From assembly GCF_037042905.1 (NCBI RefSeq), contig NC_087260.1, forward strand, positions 10,788,001 to 10,852,000: DNA of 64,000 nt, read 5' to 3'. How positions within the stretch are numbered: position 1 is the stretch's first letter; the number at the start of each line of letters is the position of its first letter. The position numbers and the translations under genes were made by a program. Below, piece after piece: positions 5,059 through 37,530 of the stretch. The notes below the pieces were generated by a model, which had not been told where the DNA came from, made no database searches, and saw only the letters and a list, made by a program, of their open reading frames with translations. Origin of the DNA: Lytechinus pictus (taxonomy: Eukaryota).

Positions 5059-6244
5059 AGCCCCTTTCACAATTGACGTACGACCTGTTTACGACCACCT
5101 GCAACAATTTTTACTTGTTGTTGCACGATCGATCCCTTGGTGTCTTGCGAGCACTCGCAGTAGTTGTAGACGATCGCACAAACTCGAGGTGGTCGGAGGT
5201 GATCGTGACTGGTCGCATCTGAACTTTGAACATGTTCAAAATCCAAACGCGATCAAATACGATTGATTCACTCGCAACAGGTCGTACCATCGGTCGGGCG
5301 ACCATCGTATTAGTGTTGTTCAACGTTGTACGACTTGGTGCGAGAGGTGGCACAACTAAGTATAGTCGCATTTAGTCGACTGGAGGTCGTACAACACTTG
5401 CACATGTGCTGGAGACCTACAGAGACCAGTCTTGCGACTGGGTGCGATAATATAAGACTGTTGCAAGATCGATCGAAATTACGGCTTACAACATTCCACT
5501 ACCGTTGCATTCGCTTGTATGCGACCGTTCAGCCCCTTTCACAATGGACGTCCGACCAGTTTACGACCGCCTGCAACAGTTTTTTCTTGTTGTTGCACGA
5601 TCGATCTCTTGGTGTCTTGCGAGCACTCGCAGTCGTTGTAGACGGTCGCATGAACTCGAGGTGGTCGTGACTGGTCACATCTGAACTTTGAACATGTTCA
5701 AAATCCGAACGCGATCAAATACGATCGATTCACTCGCATTAGGCCGTACCCGGGGTCGTACCATCGCTCGGGCGATCATCGTGCGAGCGTTGTTCAACGT
5801 TATACGACTTGGTGCGAGAGGTGGCACAACTAAGTAGTCGCATTTACTTGACTGGAGGTCGTACAACACTTGCACATGTGCAAGCGACCTACATGTACAG
5901 AGACCTGTCTTGCGACTGGTTGCGATAATAATATGGGCCATAAGACTGTTGCAAGACCGATCGCAACGGCTTACAACATTGCACTACCGTTTCATTCGCA
6001 TGTATGCGACCGTTCCACTCGCAATCCCTCGTGCAACACTCGCATGTGATCGCACGAGCACAATAAGAGCATATGCGACTTACTCGTGCAACGGGGTTTA
6101 CTGGTTGTTTTTGTTGTACGACAGCTGTTGCAACTGTGAAAGCCTCTGTGCGATCTTATGAGATGACTAGCGATTGATGCCTGTTGCAGCCTGTCGCACG
6201 ACCAAAAGGTCGCAAATGGTCGTACGTCAATTGTGAAAGGGGCT
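5059..6244. mobile_element. PIF/Harbinger-like MITE with duplicated left part
   Basis: TAA|AGCCCCTTTCACAATTGACGTACGACC ... GGTCGTACGTCAATTGTGAAAGGGGCT|TTA. A second left end starts at 5531 and repeats 5059-5530. Confidence 0.82.
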
Positions 6245-10000: not shown

Positions 10001-13000
10001 CCACTACCATCATCATCAACATCAACATGATCACCGCCACCTCTATCATCATCAATTTCAGAATCATCATCATCACCACCACCACCACCACCACCATCAT
10101 CGTCACCACCCTTTTCTTACGTAGTCCCGTAGTCTGCATCCTAGACGCCGTGTTGACTGTGTCTCCAAACAGGCAGTATCGGGGCATCTTCAGACCAACC
10201 ACACCAGCAACCAACGGGCCTGATGATGGAGAATAAGATTTAACAAGTAGTTTAAACAAGAAATCTTTATTTTGTAAGAATGATAGTTGGATTTAAATGG
10301 TTGTTGATCGTATGATCGCCATTGACGCCCTGACATTGCCCTGACGTCATTACAATTGGATAGTTATCAATTTCGACATTATACTTAAGAGATGGTTTCA
10401 ATAGCCATGCATATGAATGTGTCTATATTCATATGATTCGAAATTTGAGATTGAATGATGGTTTCATGTTCAAATTTTCAAATTAAAAGAAAAGTTATAA
10501 AGGAAATCAAAACAGACAGATTTCAGCTGATTAATTAAATAACAAGTCTTGTTCAAAATGAACGGAGACTAATCGTAAAGTAAGTGGTCTATATTATCCC
10601 CATCAAGCAAGAAACACATGTGTGTTGATTTTTCTGATTCTTTCAAACACTCAAAAGAATATTGATATAACAAAAAATAATGATAATTTACCCATGTGGA
10701 TTCCGAAACGAACTTTTATCTTCATGTGCGGTTTATGAGGCACCTCTAGGATGTTCACGTGATGCCTCAGGTCAAGGGTCACCGTGGCAATTTCACAAAC
10801 GTGTCGATCATGATGATCTGGAACGCCTATTAGTTCAATAAAAAATTAACAAAAAAGACAAAAGATAAACATCGGCAATATCCATTCAAAAGGAATTAAC
10901 ACTTTACAGAAAAAGACATTGCCTGTAACGATGAAGCAAAAAGCCGTTGTGTGAAAATCGACTCCTAAGAGAAGATCAATATAGTATTTTGAAAGAGGAT
11001 GCTAGTATTCCTTAAAAAATAAAACTTTTATTTAAAGTACAATATGATTTTCCTTTGAGGTGACACGACATATGCTCCTGCGATATTTGCTCGGGTACAT
11101 CTCAGAAGGCATAGGGTTAGAGTTAGAATTGTAATAGACTGTTTGGTTCAGATTGATGTAGAGTTTCGGACTCGGGTTTATTCATTTTTGTAGGTTAGGT
11201 TTAATGTTTGGCTTAACGTGCTGATTTTACATCGGAGCAATTGTCGCCGGAAAAAATGCCATGGACCCTCCTTTGTTGTGAATATATATTTTTTTTTATT
11301 CTAAATGACAAATAGAATGTAAATTCTGTTCCAAGGTATGTCGAGGAACGAGCTCTTATTCTAAGTACACTAAAGCCCTTGTATATATAGTCTCCCGGAA
11401 ATATATGTGATAGACACAAACTTGGTAAACAAATGTATTAAAATCTTAACTGCATCCTCATTAAAGAAGACATATATTCTCCATGCCCGACTGCCCCGCT
11501 CACTGCCTGATACATTTTAAGTTTAAATACATTTAGCATGTCCTCATGCTGATCAATGACGCGCCATAAGCAACCTGCAGTCATTCATTCTGACCTTTAT
11601 ATAATGCCTAATCCCTAATTACGCACAATCTCTAGGTATTGTCATACACACACCCATACACGCAAAAACGCGCACAATTACATATGCGTGTAATGATCAT
11701 CGTTATCATGAAAAGGTTTTTTTCAATATCAGAATGTCAGTCATCCGTCATCATCATCATCATCATCATCTTCATCTTCATCATCATCATCATCATCATC
11801 GTAATGANNNNNNNNNNNNNNNNNNNNNNNNNNNNNNNNNNNNNNNNNNNNNNNNNNNNNNNNNNNNNNNNNNNNNNNNNNNNNNNNNNNNNNNNNNNNN
11901 NNNNNNNNNNNNNNNNNNNNNNNNNNNNNNNNNNNNNNNNNNNNNNNNNNNNNNNNNNNNNNNNNNNNNNNNNNNNNNNNNNNNNNNNCCATCACTACAA
12001 CCACAAAGCCGCCATCATCGTCATCACATCATCACCACCACAATCGATCTCCGTCGTCGACATCATCATACCTGATGCAAGCATGTATGTTTCGTTGACC
12101 GTTTCGACCTTGTACACATCGTATAGCTCGATTCGAGAATCGAATAGCAGATATAATCCATTCAGCATTTCAACCACCTGGACAATGGACAGAAGTTAAA
12201 TGCAATGAAAGAGGTCGGGTTTATAATAATGGAATGCATTTATATGTGGTTTAGTTATTTATTATTATGTGGTTTCCAGTCATTAAAGGACAAGTCCACC
12301 CCAGAATCAAAATTTCATAATATTTTCTTTAAAAATCATTGATTCAAACAAAACAAAAATCTTGCTTTAACTCTCAACGGTTGCTGCATGGTTATTTTTT
12401 GAAATTTTGTTTTTTTTGAGCGAAACAATTATATTTCCATCACGATTCTGATTTGATCACGTGGTAGTATGACGTATACCACTCACATTATTTTTTGTGT
12501 TACTGCGCATGACCGTCTCTGTGTGCGAACCGCGGGCCCGGGAAGCGGTGCTCCCTCGCCGTCGATGCCTTCATCTTCCTCTTGCAGCCGAAAAACCCAT
12601 CATGCCGATGTGCCAAGCTTTTGGCTGCTCGAAAAAGCAGGGAGAACATCCGAATCACAGTTTCTTTTCGATTCCAAATCCCGTTACTGATCGAGAAAGG
12701 TGTGCAAAATGGTTACACAATATTGGGACAGACAAATTCAACGTGAAAACTTATAAATATGTGCAAAGTAGAGTTGTATGCGAGGATCATTTTGAGCCGC
12801 ATTGCTTTCAAGAAGATATACGAGCGAAAGTTATGGGATATACCTCCAAAAGGAAGTTGTTGAAGCCTGACGCCGTACCGACTTTGTTTGTCCATCGGCC
12901 AATTCCTACTCCTGAAAGGGCTTCTACCAAACGCCGTTACCAAGAATTGTCAAGAAAAGAGGTAAGCATTTTTTTTTTAATTTTCCGATCGCTCTACATT

Positions 13001-16000
13001 CACTGATTCAGCTTGCCTTGGCGTTGTACCGTACAGTCGCAGTGCCGTGACTACCGTAACTTTTCCCCCGAGCCAGCCGGCGCTGGCCAGTTACGTACCC
13101 GGCCGGGGGTACGGTCAGGCCAGGGGAGCGCGACCCAGCGGCAGCGGTGGAGCGATGATTGCCACCAACGCATCGCAGCATGCAGCAGTGCAAGCACAGC
13201 TCAGTGATAAATGAGAGCGAAGGCCGGCCAATCGAAGTGAAACTGCTGTACAAAGAAACAATTTAAACGCTAACAGCTACATATGCTGTAAGAACAGCAA
13301 CTTTGTAATTCAATATAAAGAAATAAAGAAAAGAACATTGATACTGTACCAAACTTACAAGCAACTTAGCAAGCTACATAGCTACATGTATTAAAACTAT
13401 TACTATCAACTTCAAAATTTAAGTCGAAGTCCATGTCCATGACCATGTCCTATGCCATATGGCTATGATTTGATGCACCTATCTGGCTGTTCATTTCACA
13501 CAAATTGAATGAAAATAGAGTAGACTCTACTATCTACTGTATATATGTGTACCTAGGCCTAGTTGAAATTTCACTTGACCATTTATTTGCATTTTGGCAT
13601 CATGAACGTGAAATCAAAATCAAATTTAGTGGCCTACACTTGAACAAGTACTCTTGGACATAGATTTCTTCTGTTTGCTGCGCAGCAGCGGTTACTTATT
13701 GCTGTAGTCTTGTTAACAGCGCTCGTTCTAAAAATATTATTGATGCGAAAATTTATCATATTAAATTCAATTTTAAGAGATTTTAAGAAATATAAGGCAG
13801 CATGGCATTCCATTGGCTTTGTACACCACAAGCAATGTACACATGAAAAGAGAGGCTGTGCCCCCCCCCCCTCTCTTTAATGTATGTTCTACAAGAATGT
13901 GCAATTGACCAATACATGTATATGTATTTCAATGTTTTTTCTACATGTACATTGTAATTACATTACATTTCCCATATACCTTTATAAACATGTACATGTA
14001 TAGTACATTTTATGCAGACACCAAGATCACTGAACTGAAGTATATACTAAAGTGTGAGGATGAATAAATGTATAATATAATAGGCCTACATGTACATGTA
14101 TTGGCATGTCCAAAAAAGAATGCTGCATTCCACTATGACAGATGTGGGAGGTCATTTGTTGTTTCCATTTTTATACTTGATAAGAAATAAAACCAATCTG
14201 ATGAGAATAATTGTTACCGCTACCATGATGCCGACCATAAACATTCTTTGTGCCTGATTTTTTTAAAACTTAATTTAGTCCAAAATTTGTTGTTGGTTTT
14301 TTTTTTCCATCAACATTTGAAATAGATTCTAAGAAAAAAACATTGGTACCAATTTCAAAAAGGTTATGTATTTTTTTTTTATTATTTATTACACTGTATA
14401 CTGTATGTTTTGCAAAATATTGAGGGGGGCACCAAAGTGCCTCTTTATAGAAAATATGTGCCAAAGAATTCTGCAAGATATTGTGTAATTTTTTTGCTGA
14501 GAAATGAGCATGCCATGTGTTGGCAGTCTTCAGTGTGTTGGGTTATTCATAAAATTAATTTTCAGCTAAGATTTCATAATTTCACAAAGTTCAGTTCGTA
14601 TACATGTAACTCTGATTTTTTCAGCTTTTTGATTTCACAGATTCAGACTTTCTCAAATGATTATTGCTTAGATCAATAAACATGTGCATGTGTTCTGTAA
14701 AACTGTTATTTCATTTTTTCAAAATTCTAGATCCTACAGAGCATTCCATCAACTTCCCAGAATGTTGAAATCGACCAAGACTTGACAAGTGATCGTGGTC
14801 ATGATGCTGATATATCTGATCAGACGGATCAGCAAGACAGTGACCTGTCAGATATGGTTCTATCTGAAGGCCCAGAGCCTTATGCGGTAAGTACAGGATA
14901 TTTTTTAATGAACTTTAGCTATATTAATCTACAAAATCATTTTTGTTAGTTCTGTAGCAATTCAAATAAATGAATTAAAGATTTTAAGGTCAGGTCCACC
15001 AAGGATATTTTTATTTGAATCAATAACTTATCTTACATCCACTTTTGATGAAATTTTCAATGTAACATGTACATGTACATGTAGGTTGATTTATTTCTAT
15101 TCAAATCACCTCTATGTTGCGGTGGACTTGTCCTTTTAGTCTACAAGTTATATATGTATGTCAAATATAAAATATAATTGAAATTGAATCATGTTCTGCA
15201 CATTCAAGGGTGGATTCAGGATTTTCCAAAGGGGGGAGGCTAGGCACATTTTCCCCCGAGCAAAACAAGGTTTTCACAAAAAATTGAAGGTTTCTCTACA
15301 TAAGATTTAAGGACATTCCAGTTATGGTTATGTGCACACTCCGCGTGCTGAAGTCACAATGGATTAACAGGTGATTAATTAGCTGTAGTAATAAGCTGAT
15401 TTTTCTCATCTGCATTCTAACTGCACATCCGATGTGTTATTTTATGAAGCTAATAAACTGGAATTGTTCTATGTTCTCTCCAATTTAAAAAAAATAACTC
15501 TGCAGTGCTGCAAAGTACATGTATGACAAATATGACCCCAATTTTGAATAAATGGTAGAGTGGTTTGGAATTTTTCCTTCCATAGATACAAAGCATTTGG
15601 CACGTTTTTATGTTTTCAAAAGCCTATTTACTCTAGTAAAAGTGCTGATAGTTTGAAAACAAGCACATGAACACCTATTTTTTATTGTTTGAACCTCGTA
15701 GGTATACCTTCCTCTACAACTTTACAAAGTTTGGTGAAAATGACTTAGGTTTTGAATGAAGTGCAGCATTTGTTGTACTTCTCAAATTTGTCATAAATTA
15801 CACATATTTTGAGATTGGGTTTTTGTTTTGTTTCTTTCACGCCATTTTTGAGAAATGACAGTGCTGTCAGACTTAAAAGAGCAAACAAATACTTGTAGCA
15901 ATATAAATAGATTATCCATCTATATAGCTCATATTGCAAAATTTGATGAAATTACATGGGCTTTAACACTTTGACTGAGGAATAGAGGTTCAAAACCAAT

Positions 16001-18109
16001 TGTAGTGATCTTGTGAGGTCTGAAAGTGCCAAATTGTGCAATTCTTATGAATATCCATTTGGATGAACTTTGAAGCAAAATTTAGCATATTTGGAATATT
16101 CAGGTGCTATAGTACCTGTGTGTAATGTTTGGTGAAAATAACATGAATTTTTCTTTAATTGTGGACCATCAAGCAAAAAAAAAAACTGTATGAATGTGTA
16201 TGATTGACATATTCCCATTACAAATTTCTGCTGTGATTTTCAGGGGGGGGGGCACACTTGTGTATTAAAGAGCGGCATATTTACTTAAAAAATAGATGCT
16301 GTGACTTTTAAGGAAGGGGGCACAGGCAGGATGTGCCCTCCCTCCCATTGGATTCGCCACTGTGCACGCTGCATTTAAAGGCCAAGTCCACCCCAGAAAA
16401 TTGTTGATTTGAATCGATAGAGAAAAATAAAGCAAACATAACGCTGCAAATTTCATCAAAATCGGATGTAAAATAAGAAAGTTATGACATTTTAAAGTTT
16501 CGCTTATTTTTCACAAAACAGTTAAACTCACAACTCAGCGATATGCAAATGAGAGAGTCGATGATGTCCATCACTCACTATTTCTTTTGTTTTTTATTGC
16601 TTGAATCATACAATATTTCAATTATTAAAGATTTGACAAGAAGGACCAACTAGACTTAACCTCAAACTGTTAAAATAATTGTAATTCCACATGTTCAGGG
16701 AGTTATAATTTTTTTTTTCACATGACAATGGGGAGAAAATTAGAATTGTTCATATTTCATATAATAAAATACAAAAGAAATAGTGAGTGGGTGACGTCAT
16801 CAGTCTGCCAATTTGCATACCGTCCAGGATGTGTATATAACTGTTTTGTGAAATTAACCGAAACTTTAAAATGTCATAATTTTCATATTTTACATCCGAT
16901 CTTGATGAAATTTTCATTGTTTTTCTTGATGGATTTTTCTCCTTTTATTCAAATTAACTTTTTGGTAGGGTGGACTTGGCCTTTAATGTGAAATAGCTGG
17001 GGAGCATTTAATATGAATATTTTTTTAGTTACTGAAATCCTTGAGTGGCCGTGGGCATATCATTTTAAAATTCACTGATAAAACTGTACATGTTCATGAA
17101 ATGCTCCCTTGGGCAGCTTCGTGATGCTTGTAATTTGCAAGCACTGACAAGTTGTCATTCTTTGACAGACAATAGGACAGCCAATGAAAACCAAGGATTT
17201 CATTTAAATTGTGTAAGCTGACAATTTTTAGATCACGTCAATTAATGTTTTATGTTTTTATTACCCAAAACTTTCAGTTTATGACAGTAACAACAGAACC
17301 TGAGGTACTTGTAAAGAGAAAAAGCACTGTTTTGGATGACACCCCAAGAAAAAAAAAGAGGAAGAGACGGGTATGTGTAGTATTATTTGATTTCTTTATT
17401 ATCTGTTATGATATGAGTACATATTTTGTATCTCTATGTTTGCCACTCCTGCAATACAAAGCTGATATTTTAATCAGGATTGCACTGTTAACTTATAAAG
17501 CCATCAGATACATGTACATGTTAGTATGTGAGTTCTTTATTACCTAAAAGAAAAGGAATTCACATGACCTTGATAATCGTAAGAGTGTAGATTTAATTGA
17601 CATAACTGGTATCAAATGTATTCTTTTTTTTTTATTTGAAGTCCTCTGCCATCCCTAGAATATTTAGTGTTGAATTATTTCCTTATATGGATTTTAGTTT
17701 CAGAGACTGAACTTCTTGATACACTGTACCTTTATTATATTTTTTCAGCGAAGTGGCCAAGGAAACCAGGAGGAAAGTACATGTAAGTGGGTGGTGGACC
17801 ACGCAACGCAAACTTTCGATATAAATCGATACCGTAAATTTACAAGTACCAAGGTCCAGACTGATCCAGATTGCTATGACTGTGGTATTCAAGTACCAGA
17901 ACTGGAATCAAAGATGGAACCAGAATTTGAAGTGGAAGTGGAAGAAGTGGAAGTGATGACATCTCCACTTTTAGACCATGAACATTATACATACACAGCC
18001 GGTACACCTAATAGAGTGGAAATGCTCAAGGTAGATATTAGTCTGGTTTACATCTAAAATCATCTCTCCCTCTTTCTTTCTTTCTACATAATTATACATG
18101 TGTGTGTAT

Positions 18110-18143
<34 letters not shown>

Positions 18144-21100
18144 ATCTCAAAGAATCTATATCTATATATTACATACATTACATTTATTTATATTACATTT
18201 ATGTTTGTGACATTATACTTATGTGAAAAATATATACCTAGTAGTCTCTTTTTGGAGTCATAATTAGTCTCAAAACTCTACCTGGACATTTTTTTTCTAC
18301 TTAACATGTCTTGTGCACGTTACGTTGCAGGTAGGAAACATCCAAGAAAGACCACCAAGCCCTCATAATCCTGCAATTGTGCTGACTCCTACATGTATGA
18401 CATCATCATCTGAGAGTGTGCCTGTACCTGTGATGGTGAGTTATGCTTATTATATTGTACATTAATGTAGATTTCATCCTGACAAAAACTTGCTATAGAT
18501 TAAAAGATGAAATTCAATGAAGTACACAATGAAAATTTCAGATGAATGTTGAATAAAAAGGTTTGTGCTTCACCTTATATTTGTATAAAAGAGTACATGT
18601 GCATTGGCAATGTGCAGAAGAAGGGAATACTTGTATTTATAAAAAAAAAATCTTTAATTTTTTGTTCTAAATAAGCATCCTGGCATATTACAATTGCTTC
18701 TAATCATTTCCTATCGAAATTGGATTTCTTGACCAGAACTTGAACTTACATAAAACATAAAATTTTATTGTTTTTCTTTTTTATTATTGGGGTATATACT
18801 TGTTATACAGTGACTTGTGTGCAGTGAACCACTTATAGTACAAACAAACATCTGTATTTTGATGCAAAATTTTATCACTATATTACTTGAAGAGAATGAA
18901 AGATGGCAATACATTAATGAAGGAGATAAATTACATATACATGTATAGATGAATTTTTGTAACAATGTTCTCTATATTCAATCTTGCCTGTTATCTTTAT
19001 CATTCTGCAGTCCTCAAGCAATGAAGAGTTATCCATTTGTGTACCTGCTGTCTCACGTTTAGTGCCAACCTCAGTGGCTAAGAGATCTGCTGCTGCACCA
19101 ATAAGCAGTGATTCTGATGTACTGCATACCGGACATACTTTGAGAGTAAGTCCCTGAAATGCTGGAATGATATCATACTTGACAATATCAATGTACCATT
19201 TTCATGTAAGGACAATAAATATGCACATCATAGTTTATGATGTTTGATTTTAAATTTAGGCATACAGTTCTACACTTCATTTCCGAAAATGCTTGATCAA
19301 AGAATCATAGAATCATTCTAATAATGACAAATTTTAACAAGTTAACTGGGTTCTGATTGTCCTAGAGAAAGAAAATTTGTTTGTTTATTCTCTTTTTCTG
19401 GCATTTACTCAGTTTTTTACTTTGTATACATAGTCTGGGGCTGTTTAAAAGTGAATTATTTTGATAATAATTACCCTCCATCAATTCAGTCTCAAATTCT
19501 TTGAATTTTTAATTTTTTTTTCAATAAACTTACAGGCTCTATCAATATTACAGAGCTGCCAAATACTATGGATTTCTGTATTTAGTACTGAAAAATTAGA
19601 ATACTGATGGTGTCATGCAAAATACTGATTTTTAGAATCTCACTTGTGTATGTGTTGTCCTGTGGTATTTCTTTGAAAACACTTAATTCCTTACCAAACT
19701 ACCTGATCTTCAGCTTTTAAAATACTGAAATGTTTTTGTGATTCAACAGACCCTGTTAAAATATGAACTATTACCATCATTGTCATTTTTTGTTTATTTT
19801 TATTTTTTAATGTTTTTCTTTTATATGCAGCAAGCTGCATGGAAGGGCAAGAACGCAACTGACTCAGATTTCTCCCCACCTCGAGCTTCACATCGGAGTA
19901 GTTCGAGTCCAACACCACCATCATCTGATTCGACTTCAGGATCAAACAGAGACCAATCATGCGTTTCATTGCCCAAGGTACATGTAAGTTCCAGCCTTGG
20001 CTAAGATCATGTGATCAGATTAAACTTTAAATGCATGATTTTGTATATGTACTTTAGTGTGATTTTTCATACGCCAAGCCTAATATTCTACAGTTTGTGA
20101 TTGATTATTTTTTGTAGGCATACAGCACAGGAAAAAAATATATGAGTTCTAACAAGGTTTGTGCATAACTTTGAAATAGAACTGTCACAATCATGGTCAT
20201 TTTAATATATTCTGTTATTTTTTTAATTTTCCACCTCTTCAAAATAAGTGGGGTGCAAAAATCAGTTACTTGTGATTCAACAGACCCTGTTAAAGTATGA
20301 TCTATTACCATCATTGTCATTTACGTATATTTTTATTATTTTTTAATGTTTTTCTTTTATGCAGCAAGCTGCATGGAAGGGCAAGAACACAACTGACTCA
20401 GATTTCTCCCCACCTCGAGCTCCACATCGGAGGAGTAGTTCGAGTCCAACACCACCATCATCTGATTCAGCTTCAGGATCAAACAAAGACCCTTCATACA
20501 TTCCATCACCTCAAGCAAGTTCCAGCTCAGACCCAGATGAGGAAACGTGGATGAAATACTGTACAGACCCTAAATATATTGTATTTGGGTCTCAGTTGGA
20601 TCGTCTTCTGCATTCACTACAGTGTACCAAGTGTAGCGGTGGGCACATCTCGGAAATCCAGAAGAAAGTACAGGGATCAATGCTCACGGCAACCGTTTTG
20701 TGTGTGTGTGGCAATATTGTCACACGGTGGGAGTCCCATCCTGTAATTGGATCGGCGTCTGTAGGGAATTTATTGTGTTCGTCGAGTGCACTTTTTAGTG
20801 GCTTATCTTTTGAGAGTTTAGATTTCTTCTCTTCAGTGCTTAACATGGAGTTTGTAGGTCGCACCCAGTTTTTTGACTACCAGGATAAGTACTTTAATGC
20901 TGCAATCAACTCTGCATTCAAGAGCAACTTGTCTGAAGCAAGAATTGAAGTAAGCAATAGTGGTGCTCCACTCACCGTTTGTGGTGACGGACGATGTGAT
21001 AGTCCTGGTTATAACGCCAAATACTGTAGCTACACGATGATGGAGGCCAAAACCTCAAAGATAGTAGCGATGAATCTGGTCCAAGTGAGCGAAGCCACAA

Positions 21101-24100
21101 GTTCCAACGCCATGGAAAAGATTGGGTTTCAGAGAGCATTGGATGGGCTGCTGGAGGCAGGACTAAATATTGGAACTGTAGCCACAGATCGCCATCTTGG
21201 AATTAGGAAACTTATGAAAGAGAGATACCCAAACATCGACCACCAATATGACGTTTGGCATGTTAAGAAGTCTGTTACGAAGAAACTAGTCGCAAAGACT
21301 AAGCATAAAGAATGTGGAGACTTGCTCCCATGGACCAAGTGCATCACTACCCACCTGTGGTGGTGTGCAGCTAACTGCCGGGAGGATCGAGAGATGATTG
21401 TCGAAATGTGGCAATCGCTGACGCACCACATTTGCGATGTGCATTCGTGGAATTCCGCTGATAAGTATCACCGATGTGCCCATGATGAGCTTGACCCCCA
21501 ACGAAAATTCAAGTGGCTGACTCCAGGTTCTGCTGCGCATAAAGCCCTACAAGAAATCTTGTTTGACAAGAATTTGACAGATGCAATTGGTCACATAACC
21601 AAAGCATGCCACACAGGCGAACTCGAATCTTTCCACAATATGCTGTTGAAGTACTGTCCTAAGCGTAAGCATTACCATTACGCTGGTATGCAGGCAAGGT
21701 TACAGCTTGCAGTGCTGGACCACAACCATAACACTGCAAGGAAGCCAGCAGTCATCAAAAAGGGACCAAGGAAGGGAGAACAGAAGGTTGCTTTAAAGTA
21801 CTCAAAACGCACCAAGGAATGGGTAGCGAAATTGATGAAAGAGAAGAAAGACTATTCCTACCTCGTGGAAATCCTGGAGAATATCTTGAAGATGAGAAGT
21901 GGAGAAATTGAAGTGGAAACAGTGGTACTGCCTGAACTTCCAAAGAATGTGGCACCAACGCCACGTCCATCAAAGGAAGAAGTGATGGCTCGCAAATATA
22001 CTAGATTTTGAATAAATGGTTTAAGGACTTTCAATTATCTCCAGGAAGTCTACATGTAGCGTGATTGTCCCTCTGGAGTTGATTGTTATCTGTATGGTCA
22101 ATATTCATTGAGTAATGGAAGGATTTTGTTTTTTTGTAAGCATGAGAATTTAAGAATTATTTTGAATGAAAGATGTACCTCTGCTGGTTGTACCTGGTTT
22201 TTTATCTGCTTTAATATACATGTACATGTATATGCAGCTCTATCAATACTTTTTGAAGTCAATGTATTGAAACAAACAAATGTAAATGTTTTCATTATCT
22301 ACCATATCATTGTGCTATCCATGAATAATTGCCCTTAAACAGCATTATGTTATCATTTGGGAAAGCATTGTAGCTTGGTTGAAATGTATGTTGCAAGACA
22401 AATCTACATGTACAAGACAAAACACTACTGTTACATAACAATAATACAGTACATGTAACTTAAATCTGATCTGTGTTTTATTGTACATGTAGTTCAGCAG
22501 TGTCATGAAAATAAGTTGTGGAGGCACCTTTTTTCTTTCATTACATGTTAGAGTTAAAGCTACATGTATCTAGAACAAGAGGAATGGTTGATGTGATATA
22601 CCAAAATTTAAGAGACTCACTTTCACAATTGTTTTCACGTCGGAGGCATTATCTCTCTTTACCTTTCCTTCTTGTTCTCGTAATAACTCAAGAATCATTT
22701 GACAGATTGACATCATATTTGTATCATTTATGCACATTGGACAATGATTATATTTGCATATATATAGGTGTTATATTATGGTTATCTGAAAAGCTTTGCA
22801 GGTCACAAGATGAAATGTCACAGAGATCATTATATCTCTTGAAATGTTTTGTGCTTGTGACACTTGTTACACCTCATTAACCATTCTCGGATTTAACAAG
22901 TACATTGTAAGTACATGTATGTTTACTTAGTTGACAGTGGTCTCCTTAGTTTGGAGTTACAGAGATCAAAGTGCACAGAGTTCTTACATCTTCAAATACA
23001 TCAGTCATGATAATTCAAGAACTTCTTGCAGAACTTCAAACTCATAATGCATGTAGTAATTACAATAATCTGTTTGGTTTTTTTAATGGCTTGTTTGTGT
23101 AAATATGATTTAATCTTCAGTTAATTATTTTTAATACACCGCAATATGTGAATGTATACAAAAAGAAAATTTGTTTATAAATGATTATGCAATGCCAGTT
23201 CAAGTCCTACTGTACATGATGATGAAACAAGTTTTCTTTTTTAGAGGCCAAGGTGCTTTGTGGCTATGAATCCATTGTAAAATTAAATGCCTTAACTTAC
23301 GTAGCCTTAACTTACGTAGGCTTAACCAATCCTGACACTTACGCAGTAACCTCTTTGGCTTTGGAAATTATTAGATGGGCTATTTCTCCAATGTATGAAC
23401 ATATTTGATGTTTAAAGATAGTTGTACATATTCATTATTGGATTTAGCATGTGACATCAGCATTTGATGTGTAAAGATAGTTGTACATATTCATTATTGG
23501 ATTTAGCATGTGACATCAGCATTTGATCTGTAAAGATAGTTGTACATATTCATTATTGGATTTAGCACGTGACATCAGCATTTGATCTGTTTTTCTCAGC
23601 ATGTAGTGCATCTATGAAATGATAGAAATTGTGAAGAATTGTAATTGTCTCACACATGTACTTTTAACCCTAATTCTCGGGGGGGGGGGTGGGGGGGGGG
23701 TGCCGTAATGCCCCCCCCTTGACAGTTTTCGCGATATATCTGCTGCGCAAAATTTTTCGACCTCACCGCTTACTGACTTTTTCCTGTCAAGTCTCGCACC
23801 AATTTTGAGACCAAATTTGTGACGCTCGGGTAAGCAGTTATGACATTACGCAACATTATGTAACTGCATGTCAGACCCAAAATTGCTCATAAACGTGATT
23901 TCATGTACAAATTCAATGCAAATTGTGTATTTAGCTAAAATTCATAAATGCATCATTATTTCTACTTTTACTGATTAAACTTCATTAATTTTGCCTTGTT
24001 TATTAAACTAAAAAAAACAAAAAGTAAAAAACATCCGTCCAGACATTCAGCATCTCATTAACTGAATTAAAGGACAGACATAAAGTTGGTCGCTTACATG

Positions 24101-27100
24101 TATGAACATGTACATGTAGAATGCAAAAGATGTAAATAGTTATTAATGTGTTTATGAGTAGAGATTATTTTTTAAATGTTTTCTGCATTCCAGATATTGT
24201 AAATATTGTACAATATGTACATGTAACACTGGAGGTGATCAACTGAATTATCACTCAGTGAATGAGATGATGTGTATCTATATTCTTTTTTAAATCAAAC
24301 ATCTCCAGTATATTGCAGACTGGCATTTCTCAAAGTGACATTTTCAGATACTACTACAATGGCAAAAATATCTAATATGGGTGCATGTAACATTGATACC
24401 ACATGCAGTATGCAAATAGATGTATGAAATTTAAATAATCATCCAAGTATACATGTACTGAATAGGTTTCTCTGTGTGTATTGATTTTGGTAACATTTAA
24501 AACTTTGCTCTTATTGGCTCAATATCTGGACTATTTTTTTTTTAACCAACAGGTTTATCAATTTTTCACCATACAAACATACAAAACAGGCTATGTTTTC
24601 TTGCTATATTGTTTTATTTATTTTTATGGGGTGGGTGTATTGTTAGCTCTTTGGAACTGATATTTTGTTGATATTAGATTTATTGATTCAAAGTTAAATC
24701 TTCATACATTACATAATGGGTTTTATCTGTCCTGTTTCCAGCATGAAGCAAGAATATACAGTAGCAGAACAACAAAATATAAACATTTTGCAAATGAAAA
24801 CACTTTCTTTAAATTATTTGCATTCATTTTGAAAAGTTGATAAAGAGTTTAATAAGAAGAGTTTGATAAAAGTTTGATTAGAGGAGTTTGGTAAGAGTTT
24901 AATAAGAAGAGTTTGATAATAAGAGTTTGATTAGAAGAGTTTGATTAGAAGCATTCGATAAGAGTTTGTTTTGAAAATGGTGATGTTTGGATGACGATGG
25001 TGGTGAAGAAGATTGAAGTGGTGGTGATATGTGATAGTGGTGAAGACAAAAAATTGTAAAAAATGATATAACTTTGTCTTATTAGTTTTCATAGCTCCAA
25101 CAAAATTATGCTCATACAGCACCTAATCCTTTATTAAAATTTATTCATACTATTTAACAAAATTGCAGTACCAACCTTCTGTTCATATCAAAAGGCCTAA
25201 AATAATGGAAAGTTTAAACTTTTAAGAGACCATTGTGAATTGTCCTCGTAGTATTTTACAAGGGCTGTGGAATCGGGAACGGGGGGGGGGGGGGGGTGAA
25301 ATTTTACCAAAACCATGTATAAATCGTGAAAATTGCAATCTGAATAGATTTTTGGCTCAGCCCCAACCCCTTCCAAGACCATTTCAAAGCCAGTGCCATG
25401 TTTTTTTTTATTATGCTCTGTTTTATACCCACTTTACCGATCATTTACTCTTGCTTTCTTCCATCCCTTATTTCTGCCTACCCCTTCCCAATCCCTCTCT
25501 TTCATTCTTCCATCCCAAATTTTTATCTTGCATTTCCCCGACCTTGTTTTGGATTCTTCCAATGATCCCAATTCTCTTGCCTTGTTTTATTCCATCCCCC
25601 TTCCGTCTCGTGCTTTCCTCCACTCCCCACCCCATTTCTCTTTTTTCTCTTCCACACCAACCCTTCCCTCTTCCTTTTTCTTTCCTGTACCCCTCCTCCC
25701 TCTTGCTTCCAACCATTATCCCACCCCATCTTTCACTTTCTTCCATCCCCCTACCCTGGCTCTCTTGCTTACCTCCATTCCCCTATCCGCATCCTTGCTT
25801 GGTTTTCCATTCCCTGCCCATTTCTCTCTTGCTTTCTTCCACACCTACCCTTCCCTCTTACTTTTTCCATTCCTGCACCCCTCCTCCCTCTTGCTTTTGA
25901 CCATTACCCCCACCCCATCTCTCGCTTACTTTCTTTCATTCCCCTGCCACGTCCATCTTGCTTTCCAAATTTCCAAACCCGATTTCTCCCTTACTTTCTC
26001 CCATCACACCAAATCTTTCTCTCTTGCGTTCTTATACATGTACCTCATCCCTTCTCTGTCCTGCTTCTTCCACCTCACCTTACTATTTTCCTTATTTCTG
26101 TGTCTCTTCTTCATCCATCTTTAATTTTGACCTTGCAAGAATACATTACCAGTACATATATATAAATATAAGTCAAAATGTCCTGTAATTCATGCTTTAT
26201 TTCTCTGAACATTCATGTACATGTAAACTTTGCATGTACATGTATATATTACTAAAAACAATGTGACTTGTAAATAAAGGGGTATTCATGAATTGACAAT
26301 TGGCAACGAACCTGGTAATACACGTATCTCGGGTACAAAGTACATTGTATAACACAAGTTGATATGAATGTACATGTAAGAGGCATTTTCTTATATCATT
26401 TCATTAAAAAAGTGTAGTTGAGACCCTACAAATATATTCTCTAATATTTCATGGACAAACTTAATGGATATATACATGAACAACACTAATACACACCAAT
26501 ACTAATTTATTATGATCTAAACCATAATCATAAATATGACGAATATTCGCAATTTATCTCGCTACAGACATGTCTAAAGACTCTGGACACCTACATGTAA
26601 CAATACCAACATCTAGGTAGACATACAAATTCAAAGTATTTACTAGTGTTATATATAAAATATGCGTCCTCTGTGTCTGTTATTTATTAATAAATGTGTT
26701 CAACTCTTACCATAGGAAGGAAAAATTATGGCCATTGCTAGATTTCCACAGCTGACACTACCTTTGCACTTACATGTTTGTGATTTCAAAACCAATAAAA
26801 CTCATAAATAATTTTTTTTTTATCTTTGTACATACATCATGTATGTACAAAGATTTAAAAAAAATATTTATGAGTTTTATTGGTTTTGAAATCACAAACA
26901 TGTAAGTGCAAAGGTAGTGTCAGCTGTGGAAATCTAGCAATGTACATGTACAAGATAAGGCTCTAATATACTGTATATTTTTGTTTTTATCCTACATGTA
27001 ATAGAACAGAACAGAATCCTGTTACAAATACCATACACAATAACTTGCATGCCATGACCTCATGAATATAAACTGTATCCAAACTCTTGCATCAAAATAA

Positions 27101-30100
27101 ACATTATCAACAGGCAATCAGGCACCATAACACCTTCATGTCGGCATCGGTCTAAAATCTTCTACAAACCAACAATTTTAGTGATGAATGAAAATACAAA
27201 GGAAGTGATATCGTGTACATAATTTTAGTAACATAGCTAAAGCTATCACAAAAAAAAATAAATTGGTCACATTGCGTATTCCTACAGCACATCGGATCAT
27301 ACACCACCACAGTGATGCATCAGACACACGAGTAAACATACTTATGTAACTTTCTGGGAAAATCTGTAGACTACATGTATGGTACTGGAAAAAATTGGGA
27401 CATGTGGGCAGAAAAAGGGGAACAAAATAAAGGGATGTATGACTACATCATAACCTACATTATTCCACTGTATATCATTCAAGTCATCTTTCCCTTCCCC
27501 TCTCAAAAATTCACTTGCCAATGTATGGGATACTAATAAATGGGTAAAACAAGGCAGAAAAAGGGGAAAATAAAAGGAAGAGATGTATGACTATGACTAC
27601 ATCATAACCTACATTATTCCACTGTATATCATTCAAGTCATCTTCTCCTTCCCCTATCAAAAATTCACTTGCCAATATACTACTTAATGGGTAATATACT
27701 AATAATTAATGGGATACTAATGGGTAAAACAAAATAAAAAGAAATTTCACTGTCTCTTGTACCATTCTGAAGTAAAAAAAAAAAAAAAGTAGCTAAATTG
27801 CATGGTGTTCAGGAACTTCAATGTCTTCGTTGTCCTCCCCGCGCCGAAATCCTATATAGACCCCTGATGGCTGTGGGAATTCCTGGCGGATCCTTGAAAC
27901 AACACAGGAGGGTATGACTTTCCGGACGCCCCTTCCAAGGTACCCATGCACCAGGTACGTAAAAAGCCTATAGCTGGCATAACGATACGACCTATGAATA
28001 AAAAAAATAAATGGAAACAAAATTAATGGAAATTATAATAATTTACATCAAAGTAAATTTAATCATATGATTCTGTGCAGTTGTGGCTCCAAATTTTTAA
28101 AGCAAAAAAAAAAATAAAAACAATACCATTACCAGCTCATGTACTCAGTCTCTTGCACCATGGGTATTGTTACATGAAGATATTGATGATGAGTACGAAA
28201 TCATGGGATAACAGTGTTTTTCTATTATTGATCTCCAAGTACAATGAAAGGCCAGATTAATAAAAAAAAATTAATAGAAATCCATTCACGGCCTATTTTG
28301 CTCCAGTTTTGATGAGATTTTTACTTTGTTTAGCCATCTTTATTAAGGTAACGTCATGTCAATGGCTAGCATGGCCATGGATTTATACATGTACCGGTAA
28401 TTATACATCTACATTTCAGATTTTCGCATTTTCCCCCCTTGGATTTCCACCCATCGACTGCCCGTCTTATTATACTTTGTAGTACAGATACATACGGGTA
28501 GATTTTATTTTTAGTAAAACATCTACATGGTCTATGTGCACACTACACAGAATAAGACATTCATTTATATACGGTATGCCCTTTCACTTTATGAATATGA
28601 ATCTAACTTACTTGTTGTCAAGTTCTTGGTTTGGGGCTCTTCCTCTAACACGTGCACGGGCTCTGTGTCCGCGAATGTCCCTCCGAGCAACGTTGAAAAC
28701 ACGCAATACTACTCTCGTTAGACATACTCTAACAAAATCTTCGTGGTCTCTGACACAACCATGAGCCTGAAGGTCCAAGCACCTTGCTATTTCTCTGCAA
28801 CAAATACATTCAATAGCTGTGGGCATCACAACACAGTTGCCACAGCCACACCACTCGTTGTTGGCAAGCCTTGCCTCTGCCTGGGCCTGGGCGATAGCCT
28901 CTGGATCAGGGTCTTCGTCCGCGGCAGCAGGGTATCCATTTCCTACGACTGGTGCTTCATTTATGTCCCATTCTGGCTGGAACGCGAATCCAGGAGGTCC
29001 AGCCATTGTCTACTGCACCATAGATATAAAATAAGAAAATTTCCAAAACTCCGATTCGAGGGAATATACTGTAAATGATAAACAAACGGTCTAAAATCGA
29101 TGTCGCAAGTTGATTGATGTAAAAACAGCAAACGCAGAAAGCTTGTATGAGGTGTGTACATGTACTGTATACTGTACCGGTACTGGTATCGGCTAGATCA
29201 AATTCAGTCACAGTGCGTACGTGGGTCGAGTTCGCCCGATCAAACTCAGCAACAAAATTGACTGATAAATTCAGGAATATGGTCTAAAAAGTTATGTAGA
29301 TACCTTGTAATACAATTTGATGTATACCCGTCGCTGTAAACGTCATTCATCACTATTAAAATACATATAATAAAATATATCTTCGTAAAGTACCGAGAAT
29401 TGGTCTACGAATAAATTTTGCTCGGCGGGCGAGATTATACCGGTCGAGATCGAGGGCAGTGTCGCACAACACGGCTCGCTGCTAGATCTCGCGCTAGCGC
29501 GCGCTACGAGTGCAAAGCTAGTAGAATCGCATCGTTTCTTAGCGAGAGAGCGGAAGTCTGTTGACCCAAATCATAGTGAGTGCCCTACGTCACAGAAAAT
29601 CGCGTCGCAATGCATTGTGGGGTAGAACAGCCTCTTTCGAAATTTTCTAACCCGATTTTAACACAATCTTTAAAAAATCATTAAAAATCTCCCGATGACC
29701 AATTTTCGAAAAGAAAACTATTTTTGGGTATCTCATATTTTTGTCTTTCGGTAAAACACCTTTTTAAGCCGGCCTGGACTTGTCCTTTAAAACTTACACT
29801 ATTTACGAATATATCTTTATCAGTCTGCTCAGTGGTTGAATTGATTAAAGTTGATATATAGGATGGGCATCACGCAAGGCTTATACCTTGGTAGGTATTC
29901 TGAACAGTTCTCTCTCATCCTAATATCTTCATTATTGTAATCATCGTAACAAAATTTGAACACCATCACATACGGTATGTGGTGGTGTTGATACCACGGT
30001 GATTTTGTTTTCCTTTACCGAAGTATGATATGAAGACGATGGAGAATGTTTTCCATTGAAGCAAAGAAGGTATATTTTCCAATTCATCAGAGAGTTTTGA

Positions 30101-33100
30101 TATCACGAAGATAGATGATTCGGATAGAAAAAAATATCCGACTTTTGTTCTTGTCTTGTTTCAGACAGTTCCCTATTTGGTTTTCCCTTTTGAAAGTCGT
30201 AAAACAATTCGCCAAGTATCATATTTCATTTCCGCCGATTCAAACACCCGGTATACACAGTCCATGGCCATGTCAAATTTACGCCACGGATAGTTACCTC
30301 CATCGGGGAGCTGATTCGTCCTCAAAACCGACTGGAGCCGGCGATGTTGACAAACGACTAAGATCGATTCATAGAGTTTGCCATCCCCTGTCTTGTTTTT
30401 AGTTCGCTATTTAGCCCCCCCCCCCCCTCCCCTTCGAAAATCTTAAAAATATTCACCATCTATTACGTTTTATTCCCGTTAATTCAAATACCCGGTTCAA
30501 ACCGGCATCCATGGTCGGATTACCCCCGGTTATTTACCTCCATCGGGGCGCTTCGTCCACAGAGCCGACTGAAACCGGCGATGTCGGCAAACATGACCGA
30601 GGCTGACTCGTACAGTTCACCATTCACGCCTTCCGTATTCATCAACCGTAGAGCAACCGAAGGCGGCAACATCGAATTAAGAAGGTAAGTGGATCGCTTT
30701 TTCTCCTTGTTGAGTTCCTAGGCAATGACGGACATGGAATAGATGATTTTAAAACAAATATCACATTGATTTATGGGTGCCCCCCCCCCTCCCCCTCGTG
30801 GATTCGTTTCATAAAAGTATGGTACTGTGCTATTATGGCAAATTGGCAACTACCATGGTAGTAAGTAGCCAATCAAAAGGTTTCCACGATGGTCACACTA
30901 ATGTCTCAAAGTTACAATAAATTCTTTATGAAACGGGTCCAATTCCCGATAGAACATCACTGAGTACGGACTATCGTGTTTTTTTTTTCAAATATAATAA
31001 TTCAAACAAGGATTACATTTAACATGGTGATGGATAATTACTAGTGTTAATCACTAACTGGAAAGCTGAAAATCCCAAATAAGTATGAATCACATCTTCA
31101 CATTATTTATTAGTGAACAGACTTTGAACACTCACACAGTGGACACACTGTTTGACACTCTGAAGCTTTGAACACACTTTGAACACTCACACCGTGGACA
31201 CACTGTGTGACACTCTCAAGCTTTGAACACACTTTGAACACTCACACCGTGGACACACCGTGTGACATTCTCAAGCTTTGAACCCACTTTGAACACTCAC
31301 ACCGTGGACACACTGTGTGACACTCTGAAGCTTTGAGCACACTTTGAACACTCTCACCGTGGACACACTGTATGATCCTCTGAAGCTTTGAACACACTGA
31401 ACACTCACACCGTGGACACATTGTATGATCCTCTGAAGCTTTGAACACACTTTGAACACTCACACCGTGGACACACTGTGTGACACTCTCAAGCTTTGAA
31501 CACACTTTGAACACTCACACCGTGGACACACCGTGTGACATTCTCAAGCTTTGAACACACTTTGAACACTCACACCGTGGACACACTGTGTGACACTCTG
31601 AAGCTTTGAGCACACTTTGAACACTCTCACCGTGGGCACACTGTATGATCCTCTGAAGCTTTGAACACACTGAACACTCACACCGTGGACACATTGTATG
31701 ATCCTCTGAAGCTTTGAACACACTTTGAACATTCACACCGTGGACACACCGTGTGACACTCTCAAGCTTTGAACACATTTTGAACACTCTCACCGTGGAC
31801 ACACTGTGTGACACTCAAGCTTTGAACACACTTTCAACACTCACACCGTGTACACAATGTATGATCCTCTGAAGCTTTGAACACACTTTGAACACTCACA
31901 CCGTGTGACACTCTGAAGCTTTGAAAACACTTTGAACACTCACACCGTGGACAGACTGTGTGACACTCTGGAGCTTTGAACACACTGAACACTCACACTG
32001 TGGACACACTGTATGATCCTCTGAAGCTTTGAACACACTTTGAACACTCACACCGTGGACACACTGTGTGACACTCTCAAGCTTTGAACACACTTTGAAC
32101 ACTCACACCGTGGACACACTGTGTGACACTCAAGCTTCGAACACACTGTGAACACTTACACCATGGACACACTATGTGACACTCTGAAGATGTGAACACA
32201 CTGTGAACACTCACACCGTGGACACACTGTGTGACACTCAAGCTTCGCACACCCCTTTGAACATTCGCACTGTGAACACACTGTGAGAACTCACACTGTG
32301 GACACACTGTGTAATACTCTAACTTTGAACATACTATGAACACACGGTGAAAATTCACACTGAGAATACACTGTTAACACACTGTGGACACTGATACTCT
32401 TAATACTGTGAACACCCTCTAAAAACACTGTGAACACACTCTGTGACACTGTGATCTTTCCAGCAGGGCGTGTGTATGATACCTTGGTCTGTGTTGCCAG
32501 CGTAAGGGCGTAGTTTTGTAAGACTGTGGTCAATGACCAGATCGCCCGGAGGGTGAGCGGACACATTATGATGACGACTACCACGAGGAAGATGCTGACG
32601 GCGATGTTTTCAGTGTCGTCCTCAAGCTCCTTCTCGAGTCGGGTCAAGATCTCATCGGCCATATTCTTCTGAACCTTCTCTAGTATGTCGATATAGACCT
32701 GGACAAGAGAGAGAGAGAGAGAGAGAGGGAGGGGATAGAGTAGAGAGGGAGAGAGATTGGGAGGGAGAGGGAGAGAGAGCGGGTCGGTCATTTCGAAGTT
32801 CCAATAACTTTTTCAAGTGAAAAAGAAAAAGTCAATATGTTGAAATACTATTTGAGCGCATACTGTTTTTATAAACTCTTGTGCTTCGACAAAATGACAA
32901 ACAAAATGAATCAAACAACAGGTATGTAGGTCTTTAAAAAAAACTGCAATTTAAAACGATCTGAGAAACGAACAAACGAACGAACGACAAACAAAAAATG
33001 AATAAACAAAATAATTAACAAATGTACGAACGGAAAAACGAACGAATAAACGAGTACACGAACAAACTCACGAACGAATAAACGACATAAACGAAAAATC

Positions 33101-36100: not shown

Positions 36101-37530
36101 TCTCGATATCGACACTGTAGAAGAGGGAGGGGACAAAAATAGGAGAGAGGGGTGGGGATGGAGAGAGAGAGAGAGGGGGGAGACAAAAATGATGAAGAGG
36201 GGAGGGGAAGAAAGTGACACGGAATGAGAGAGTTATAATACTTCAACATCTACTATAGATCATGCGTGAACCACACCATCATGACAGGGCAATTCATACT
36301 GTCAAACGAAAGGTTGACAGTATGAATTAACACAATCGACAACCATATNNNNNNNNNNNNNNNNNNNNNNNNNNNNNNNNNNNNNNNNNNNNNNNNNNNN
36401 NNNNNNNNNNNNNNNNNNNNNNNNNNNNNNNNNNNNNNNNNNNNNNNNNNNNNNNNNNNNNNNNNNNNNNNNNNNNNNNTTATCTGTTTATTTAATTAAA
36501 GGTCAAATCCACCCCAGTAAATTGTTGATTTGAATCGATAGAGAAAAATCAAACAAACATAACGCTGCAAATTTCATCGAAATCGGATGTAAAATAAGAA
36601 AGTTATGACATTTTAAGTCTCGCTTATTTTTCGCAAAACAGTTAAATGCACAACTCAGCGATATGCAAATGAGAGGGTCGATGATGTCCATCACTCACTA
36701 TTTCTTTTGTTTTTTTATTGTTTGAATAATATAATATTTCAATTTTTACAGATTTGACAATAAGGACCAACTTAACTTAACCATAAACTGTTAAAATAAT
36801 GGTAATTCCCCATGTTCAGGGAGAAATTAAACTTTTTTTCACTTGACAAGGAGGATAAAATTAGAATATTTCATATAATAAAATACAAAAGAAATAATGA
36901 GTGGGTAACGTCATCAGTCTGCCAATTTGCATACCGATCAGGATGTGCATATAACTGTTTTGTGAAATTAAGCGAAACTTTGAAATGTCACAACTTTCTT
37001 ATTTTACATCCGATTTTGATGAAATTTTCAGTGTTTTGCTTGTTGTATTTTTTTCCTTTTTTCAAATCAACTTTTTGTTGGGGTGGACTTGTCCTTAAAT
37101 ACTTCAGCACCTACTACACAGTGGCCATGTGAATAAACACAATCGACAGCCATATATATAAATACATGTGAAAATAAATAGATAAATAAATATATAAATG
37201 CTATGAATGGTTATATATTCTCTGTATATTTAATTAATACTTGAGTACCTACTATACAGTACAGTGGCGTAATAAGGCAAAATAAAATCGAGGGGGCTCA
37301 TTCTGGTGTATTGCGTAATTTTTTTTTTTAAGTTGTGAGCGAGTGAAGCAAGCGAGCAAAAATTTAGACACTTTTATTACCAAAAAAGTTTGTGATAGCT
37401 TTTGACATAATATTAATAAAATTATATTCCTGCCTTATCCCTGTCCTTTTCACTTGTTTTTCTTGGTCGTGATTTTTTTTTTTTTGGGGGGGGGGGACAC
37501 ATCTACACACACACACATAACACAACTGCC

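Follow-up and report, generated by a model that had tools for sequence, protein, structure and literature searches.

The window analysed here is a stretch of 64,000 nucleotides (nt) from the urchin Lytechinus pictus (contig NC_087260.1 of assembly GCF_037042905.1, positions 10,788,001 to 10,852,000 of the forward strand), in which an intron of a minus-strand guanylate-cyclase-like gene is occupied by an element of 17,500 bp. This element spans window positions 12287-29786, has TTAA at both flanks, and carries two genes that face each other: a transposase with a THAP zinc finger and a DDE core, and KolX, a small protein resembling the cytoplasmic ballast of the P2X7 receptor. Just inside each end lies a box resembling a cyclic AMP response element (CRE), and the left terminus is of a type shared with an abundant family of miniature inverted-repeat transposable elements (MITEs). 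Taken together, the locus very probably holds a structurally complete cut-and-paste transposon of the Kol0 group of the Kolobok superfamily, inserted at a TTAA site within the cyclase-like gene. The features are collected in Table 1.

Table 1. Features of the element and of the adjoining host exons (window coordinates; P0002 and P0121 are L. pictus proteins)
Feature	Position	Strand	Basis and remarks
Host cyclase exon downstream of the interrupted intron	11995-12177	-	Pfam Guanylate_cyc profile 31-75, E 1e-7
Left TTAA target-site duplication	12283-12286		Direct reading; same 4 bases at 29787-29790
Left terminus	12287-12306	+	Perfect inverted-repeat core 12287-12298; 20-nt MITE-type terminal sequence to 12306
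CRE-like subterminal box (TGACGTA, 3 nt, CACTCAC)	12470-12489	+	183 bp inside the left end
Transposase exon 1, THAP zinc finger (C2CH and AVPTLF box)	12602-12961	+	120 codons, donor GTAAGC
Predicted transposase exon 2, acidic linker, phase 0	14731-14886	+	Splice sites; weak similarity to P0002 residues 27-62
Nested MITE, 612 bp, TTAA-flanked	16375-16986		In a transposase intron; ends match the element's left terminus
Predicted transposase exon 3, nuclear-localisation-like basic run PRKKKRKRR	17278-17370	+	P0002 residues 56-85, 56% identity, E 2e-5; splice sites
Predicted transposase exon 4	17749-18030	+	Similar to P0002 residues 85-173, E 6e-6; splice sites
Optional transposase exon 5	19831-19977	+	90%-identical older tandem duplicate of the last exon's start; in frame whether used or skipped
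Last transposase exon, DDE core	20365-22011	+	548 codons and stop
KolX exon 2, including stop codon	27793-27991	-	Pfam P2RX7_C profile 143-192; identical to P0121
KolX exon 1, ATG at 29006, donor GTAAGT	28612-29006	-	100% identical to P0121
CRE-like subterminal box	29573-29592	-	194 bp inside the right end
Right terminus	29775-29786	-	12-bp core same as left; next bases GGCCGG off the MITE-type consensus
Right TTAA target-site duplication	29787-29790		Direct reading
Host cyclase exon upstream of the interrupted intron	30520-30672	-	Pfam Guanylate_cyc profile 4-32

The exon model of the transposase gene is a prediction, in which homology backs exons 1, 3, 4 and 6, and each predicted internal exon is preceded by an AG acceptor with a pyrimidine tract and followed by a GT donor. 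Its six GT-AG exons encode 845 or 894 amino acids (aa) without stops, and because all are in phase 0, the frame is open whichever internal exons are used. The first exon, for which the corresponding exon of protein P0004 is 121 aa long, contains a complete THAP domain (Pfam THAP, E 9e-18, profile 1-87 of 87), with its ATG 315 bp from the left end of the element. At the intron/exon boundary of the last exon lies an old tandem duplication (segments 19736-19969 and 20270-20506, 90% identical), which has made an additional in-frame exon candidate, listed as exon 5. A search with the last exon found 308 relatives, the best 120 of which are 38-69% identical, include several with a THAP domain, and come mostly from echinoderms, hemichordates, amphioxus and lungfish. 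Every Asp, Glu, Cys or His residue conserved in at least 95% of these 120 homologues is kept in the last exon (D208/D212, D275, CDVH at 357-360, C371xH373 and E421, in last-exon numbering), corresponding to both Asp of GDGRCDSPG, the Asp of ATDRH, DVWH, the CDVH that represents the C/DxxH signature, CxH, and the Glu of LESFH. In four sequencing runs, guessed to be RNA, 94-98% of the words of this exon occur.

The second gene, KolX, converges on the transposase and consists of two exons joined GT-AG across a split Lys codon, encoding 197 aa from an ATG 780 bp from the right end of the element. Its product is identical over its whole length to P0121, which NCBI names 'P2X purinoceptor 7-like [Lytechinus pictus]'. 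The initial annotation had described this second protein as P2X7-ballast-like, which is borne out at several levels. Firstly, the whole protein matches Pfam P2RX7_C (E 3.5e-13), and Protein Data Bank (PDB) sequence searches with the single exons reach P2X7 residues 456-525 and 546-592, at marginal E values of 0.007-0.08. Secondly, its relatives number 2,399 cluster representatives at E <= 1e-3 in an exhaustive search, and in an alignment of 95 of these W52 and seven cysteines (C53, C55, C58, C69, C70, C84 and C161) are near-invariant; seven conserved cysteines in KolX were likewise reported by Kojima & Bao 2022 (PMC9587614). Thirdly, the AlphaFold model (predicted local distance difference test score, pLDDT, 86.3) matches P2X7 receptor structures only, with 14 PDB matches at E <= 1e-3, and superposes on the cytoplasmic ballast of P2X7 (PDB 6u9v, 9e3m) at 23-27% identity, with a root-mean-square deviation from human P2X7 (9e3m) of 2.7 A over 140 columns. 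The product is predicted, from this model, to have the zinc-binding P2X7 ballast fold. Unlike the receptor, in which the ballast is joined to an ion channel, KolX stands alone as a transposon-encoded protein of 197 aa with a disordered N-terminus. The RefSeq gene 'P2X purinoceptor 7-like' at 27793-29006 is therefore a transposon gene, and because of its name urchin P2X receptors could be miscounted. Of the two convergent spliced open reading frames without stops or frameshifts that had been described at this locus, both are indeed open and KolX is identical to the NCBI model, while the splicing of the transposase is predicted.

Four features define Kolobok elements (Kojima & Bao 2022, PMC9587614), namely a TTAA duplication, termini of the form RR...YY, a C/DxxH signature and, ahead of the catalytic Glu, a zinc finger, and the Kol0 group has its founder in Kolobok-1_XT of Xenopus, with Kolobok-1_BF known from amphioxus (Kapitonov & Jurka 2007, cited in Kojima & Bao 2022, Mob DNA 13:24, PMC9587614). 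The element shares with both the TTAA duplication, the RR...YY termini, and a KolX with P2X7 ballast fold and conserved cysteines. It also shares with them the motif string GDG(R/Q)xDSPG, ATDRH, (Q)xDVWH, C/DxxH, zinc finger, CHTG(E/D)LExFH, the last exon showing each motif in the same order as Kolobok-1_XT1p and Kolobok-1_BF1p do in the supplementary Data S5 alignment of PMC9587614; this comparison is one of motif collinearity, neither a tree nor a scored alignment. Assignment to the Kolobok superfamily thus stands on TTAA, AG...CT, this collinearity and the convergent KolX, and placement within Kol0 rests on KolX and the collinearity. Pfam places the last exon no more closely than a sub-threshold MULE match, and the relatives carry PF20700 'Mutator-like transposase', so Pfam is without a Kolobok-specific model. 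Kol0 has been listed from vertebrates, annelids, cnidarians and sponges, and from L. pictus only the KolobokP lineage has been described (PMC9587614). Unlike the listed Kol0 elements, this one has an echinoderm host, is 17.5 kb long, contains nested repeats and at least six transposase exons, and is present as one full copy. The initial annotation had held that the superfamily was described and the family perhaps not; the two-gene Kol0 kind was indeed published in 2022, and the element is an additional specimen of it.

Two other classes of transposon were considered and rejected. The piggyBac elements have the TTAA site in common with this one, but its AG...CT termini and THAP-DDE transposase are of Kolobok type. 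P elements likewise share the THAP domain, but they make 8-bp target duplications and are without KolX, which is present here.

The limits of the element can be read directly. The TTAA target-site duplication is present as originally described, the first bases are AG and the last CT, as the 5'-RR...YY-3' rule for Kolobok termini demands, and the flanks read ...CCAGTCA-TTAA and TTAA-AACTTACAC..., matching the letters previously given for the empty site. The 'perfect' terminal inverted repeats hold for a core of 12 bp only (AGGACAAGTCCA) and not beyond it: over 30 nt, with TTAA counted, the terminal pair is 80% complementary. Because 471 inverted pairs were found in the region, among which the terminal pair ranks 13th, the short terminal inverted repeat is unremarkable when taken alone. 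By contrast, the window contains 7 copies of the 17-nt terminal word where 0.01 would be expected, and the left terminus with its TTAA (24 nt, <=2 mismatches) has 16,313 matches in the L. pictus assembly (812 Mb), versus 0 for the control. These matches, roughly one per 50 kb, are the ends of TTAA-flanked MITEs of about 600 bp. The right terminus is different, with the 12-bp core followed by GGCCGG where MITE ends read CCCCAG; the right-end word, of 22-28 nt, is unique in the genome, and this terminus is private to the 17.5-kb copy. The CpG-rich zones reported inside both ends were also found, with an observed/expected ratio of 1.0-1.2 over 12287-13286 and 1.5-1.6 over 29187-29786, versus 0.54 for the whole element. 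With the CRE-like box inside each end, the left one 132 bp upstream of the transposase ATG, these zones lie in promoter position.

Two sister families in the same genome provide the closest comparison of structure. Among other transposase loci, the best are 48-53% identical to the element's transposase. Family A, present at C15:21004087-21019558 and also on C19 and C29, is 15.5 kb long and has the terminus AGGAAACCGAACCCCA; its three copies occupy different TTAA sites and are 98.6-99.7% identical, and NCBI LOC129284132 (P0004) belongs to it. Family B, with copies on C6 and C13, reaches 20 kb or more, and each family has 2-3 copies at ~99% identity. Hence the large size and many introns that had been thought striking in the element are real, but not unusual among the Kol0 elements of L. 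pictus. The resemblance extends to gene order and orientation, to a two-exon KolX on the opposite strand split at the same place, to a TGACGT(A/C) box 180-211 bp inside the ends, and to termini that read TTAA, AGGA and then CCCA ~10 nt inward. The THAP start lies 319 bp from the left end in family A and ~290 bp in family B, and the KolX start 789 bp from the right end in family A. The sister families differ from the element in their proteins, with transposases at the 48-53% identity given above and KolX 40-61% identical, in termini unlike those of the abundant MITE, and in a box without the CACTCAC half.

These distances and boxes agree with those of the element, and because of that agreement its limits could be fixed without a second copy. 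They also bear on whether the left end might be a stray MITE terminus, with the true limits of the element elsewhere or non-existent. Such a coincidence is suggested by the commonness of the left 24 nt, which about 16,300 MITE ends share, by an inverted repeat that is perfect over a mere 12 bp and stands 13th among the inverted pairs of the region, and by similarity to the MITEs that stops at about 24 nt and one 20-nt box. Nevertheless TTAA abuts both ends, removal of the exact interval restores a host intron of 0.85 kb, and there is no second MITE end nearby to complete a MITE. The start codons stand where they do in the sister families, whose limits were set by three-way copy comparison (315 versus 319 or ~290 bp for THAP; 780 versus 789 bp for KolX), and the CRE-like box recurs at like depth in both ends (183 and 194 bp), as it does in the MITEs and both sister families. 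A chance origin of the ends is therefore scarcely credible.

The host gene is interrupted within its cyclase domain. Exons on either side of the element match successive parts of the same domain (Guanylate_cyc 4-32 and 31-75), and the intron between them measures ~18.36 kb, or ~0.85 kb once the element and one TTAA are subtracted, in agreement with the split cyclase domain and the expansion from ~0.85 to ~18 kb that had been proposed. Relative to the host gene, the transposase is antisense and KolX has the same sense; a 17.5-kb insertion with a same-strand gene, within the catalytic domain of a receptor cyclase, may affect host splicing.

The sole other trace of the element's own family is a fragment at C5:46616812-46617456, 95.7% identical to window 21562-22211, which differs by 3.2% at coding and 4.5% at non-coding positions and carries a 4-bp frameshift. 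At some time in the past, this family must thus have possessed one further copy or more. Next to this fragment is one of three tandem arrays of Kolobok transposase coding fragments (C5:46620655-46623636, C1:38667524-38684214 and C9:12068363-12073145), the C5 array having a period of ~1.04 kb and 64-67% protein identity. Parts of the transposase occur elsewhere in the assembly: the closest full THAP domains, 68% identical to that of the element, belong to a trio of loci on C21, and ~45 near-identical loci (such as C3:3799707-3799895 and C12:9608993-9609181) match THAP residues 1-63 only, at 73% identity, within open frames of 167 aa. The latter either stem from amplification of a non-autonomous derivative or constitute a family of THAP genes.

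A single-copy locus with intact frames might also have been retained by the host, which would keep the transposase, KolX or both for a cellular function while the ends became vestigial. NCBI annotates KolX as an ordinary gene, and there is precedent in the proposal of Kojima & Bao 2022 (PMC9587614) that P2X7 and zebrafish nanor arose from KolX. On the other hand, the TTAA duplication and terminal core are intact, the complete two-gene layout retains the end-to-exon distances of mobile sister families, and the element sits in an intron of an unrelated gene. Neither protein has a close orthologue among the protein relatives from other urchins: the best transposase matches are 50% identical in Lytechinus variegatus and 57% in Strongylocentrotus purpuratus, the best KolX match is 60%, and for both proteins all matches from other sources, among the protein relatives searched, are at 69% identity or below. 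Intact ends and duplication, together with this lack of close orthologues in other urchins, make domestication appear unlikely, to the point that it carries very little weight as an explanation of the locus.

If the element is, as these comparisons indicate, a Kol0 transposon, its mode of mobility can be proposed from what is known of related proteins. By analogy with known THAP domains, that of the transposase would bind terminal or subterminal DNA; the DDE core, as in known DDE transposases, would cut at the AG...CT termini and paste the element into TTAA; and KolX, to judge from the families involved, may act as an accessory factor. The coding capacity of the element is apparently complete.

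Several observations nevertheless weigh against an intact, mobile transposon. There is no second full copy in the assembly, and neither of the two genes nor the terminal stretches of 418 and 391 bp occur there more than once. A search of the assembly with both flanks returned this locus alone, and no empty-site haplotig was found; the left junction occurs in four sequencing runs of one study, whose run type is uncertain. The protein collection contains no transposase from the element's locus, though KolX is present in it. Finally, thousands of MITE ends share a consensus from which the right terminus deviates at its positions 13, 14 and 17, and such an aberrant terminus could impair excision. 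The initial annotation had regarded the absence of any other copy with these boundaries as evidence against its interpretation. That absence is literally what was found, yet the boundaries are validated in another manner by the sister families, which share the end-to-exon distances and the terminal pattern.

The description of the element as potentially active can accordingly be divided. The frames and catalytic residues are kept, but activity is unproven: the copy is single, its right terminus is private, and the other trace of the family is dead and ~4% diverged. Several near-identical copies at different sites, by which activity would be recognised, do not exist for this family. In favour of mobility are two long open genes with all conserved residues, the CpG-rich ends and the very young sister families; against it are the single copy, the private right end, a relative that is old and dead, and the lack of an annotated transposase. 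The latter points would also fit a true Kol0 insertion whose family has become extinct, leaving a last copy that is immobile, for instance through its aberrant right terminus, and whose frames have not yet decayed. The internal 535-bp duplication, already 10% diverged, the CpG-depleted interior (0.54) and the 3-4.5% divergence and frameshift of the sole other trace are consistent with such a stranded relic. However, ~3.2 kb of coding sequence in two genes contains no stop or frameshift and retains every highly conserved residue, when by a rough estimate half of the ~3.5% divergence from the C5 fragment would predict several disabling changes. In addition, both ends keep CpG-rich zones that look unmethylated, and family A shows very recent Kol0 mobility in the same genome. 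Stranding of the last copy is therefore possible, but the less probable outcome.

The left terminus links this single copy to the abundant MITEs. A MITE is nested in a transposase intron of the element itself, and a second full MITE in the window (36496-37100) is 89.6% identical to it. Element and MITE resemble each other only in the outermost ~24 nt and, equally deep inside the ends, in the subterminal box. This CRE-like box is found at both ends of the MITEs and has 25,435 matches in the genome versus 46 for the control, typically as convergent pairs ~215 bp apart, which is the geometry of the MITEs; many of these copies read TGATGT, as CpG decay would give. The MITE family numbers from several thousand to over ten thousand copies. 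Because its left terminus and subterminal box are those of this family, the element is one candidate source of transposase for these MITEs. The C21 trio and the ~45 partial-THAP copies detract from this link, as either, with THAP domains at 68% and 73% identity respectively, could be a better partner for the MITEs.

Comparable pairings are known from other genomes, with the T2-type MITEs of Xenopus mobilised by Kolobok elements, and mPing and Ping forming another pair of MITE and autonomous element. As in those systems, a rare autonomous element shares its terminus with an abundant, short, non-autonomous family that inserts at TTAA. Unlike them, the link here consists of 24 nt of one end and a 20-nt box, and the MITE is no simple deletion derivative. 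A bolder and rather improbable extension would make the element a living master, or one of a few, that feeds the MITEs, with the TGACGT-N4-CACTCAC box serving as the binding site of the THAP domain or of a recruited host bZIP protein. Were that so, the L. pictus genome would owe ~25,000 scattered CRE-like sites to transposition.

Both the pairing of two genes in Kol0 elements and the relation of KolX to the P2X7 ballast have been known since their publication in 2022. What is new is a family made up of one full copy and one dead fragment ~4% diverged, with a left terminus and a CRE-like box that are both shared with MITEs. Among the advantages of L. pictus, an urchin kept in the laboratory, is its short generation time, and its genome combines very young Kol0 families with a single copy that is fully open and has an end matching those of a huge MITE family. 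It therefore offers natural material for the question of what role KolX plays in transposition, and for whether a short shared terminus and one subterminal box suffice for the mobilisation of MITEs.

Other features of the locus concern the host gene and the sequence between the element's genes. Further cyclase exons follow downstream in the minus-strand host gene. The first metal-binding Asp of the cyclase is present, as FADIAGF, in exon 30520-30672. Class III cyclases usually have IGDxYM, and by comparison the second metal-binding Asp presumably has been replaced by Glu in exon 11995-12177. The next host intron contains a minisatellite (31114-32292; 55-bp unit, ~22 copies, 87% match) that gives rise to long spurious open reading frames on the minus strand. 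No CpG island in the window is stronger than the one at 5001-6100 (GC 0.46-0.52, observed/expected 1.2-1.6), downstream of the last recognised cyclase exon. Between the two genes of the element lie a strongly C/T-rich block (25200-26100, GC skew -0.45), with long pseudo-reading frames rich in proline, serine and leucine on the plus strand, and a hairpin (26728-26947) whose 91-nt arms are 97% complementary around a 38-nt loop, with no TTAA flanks evident.

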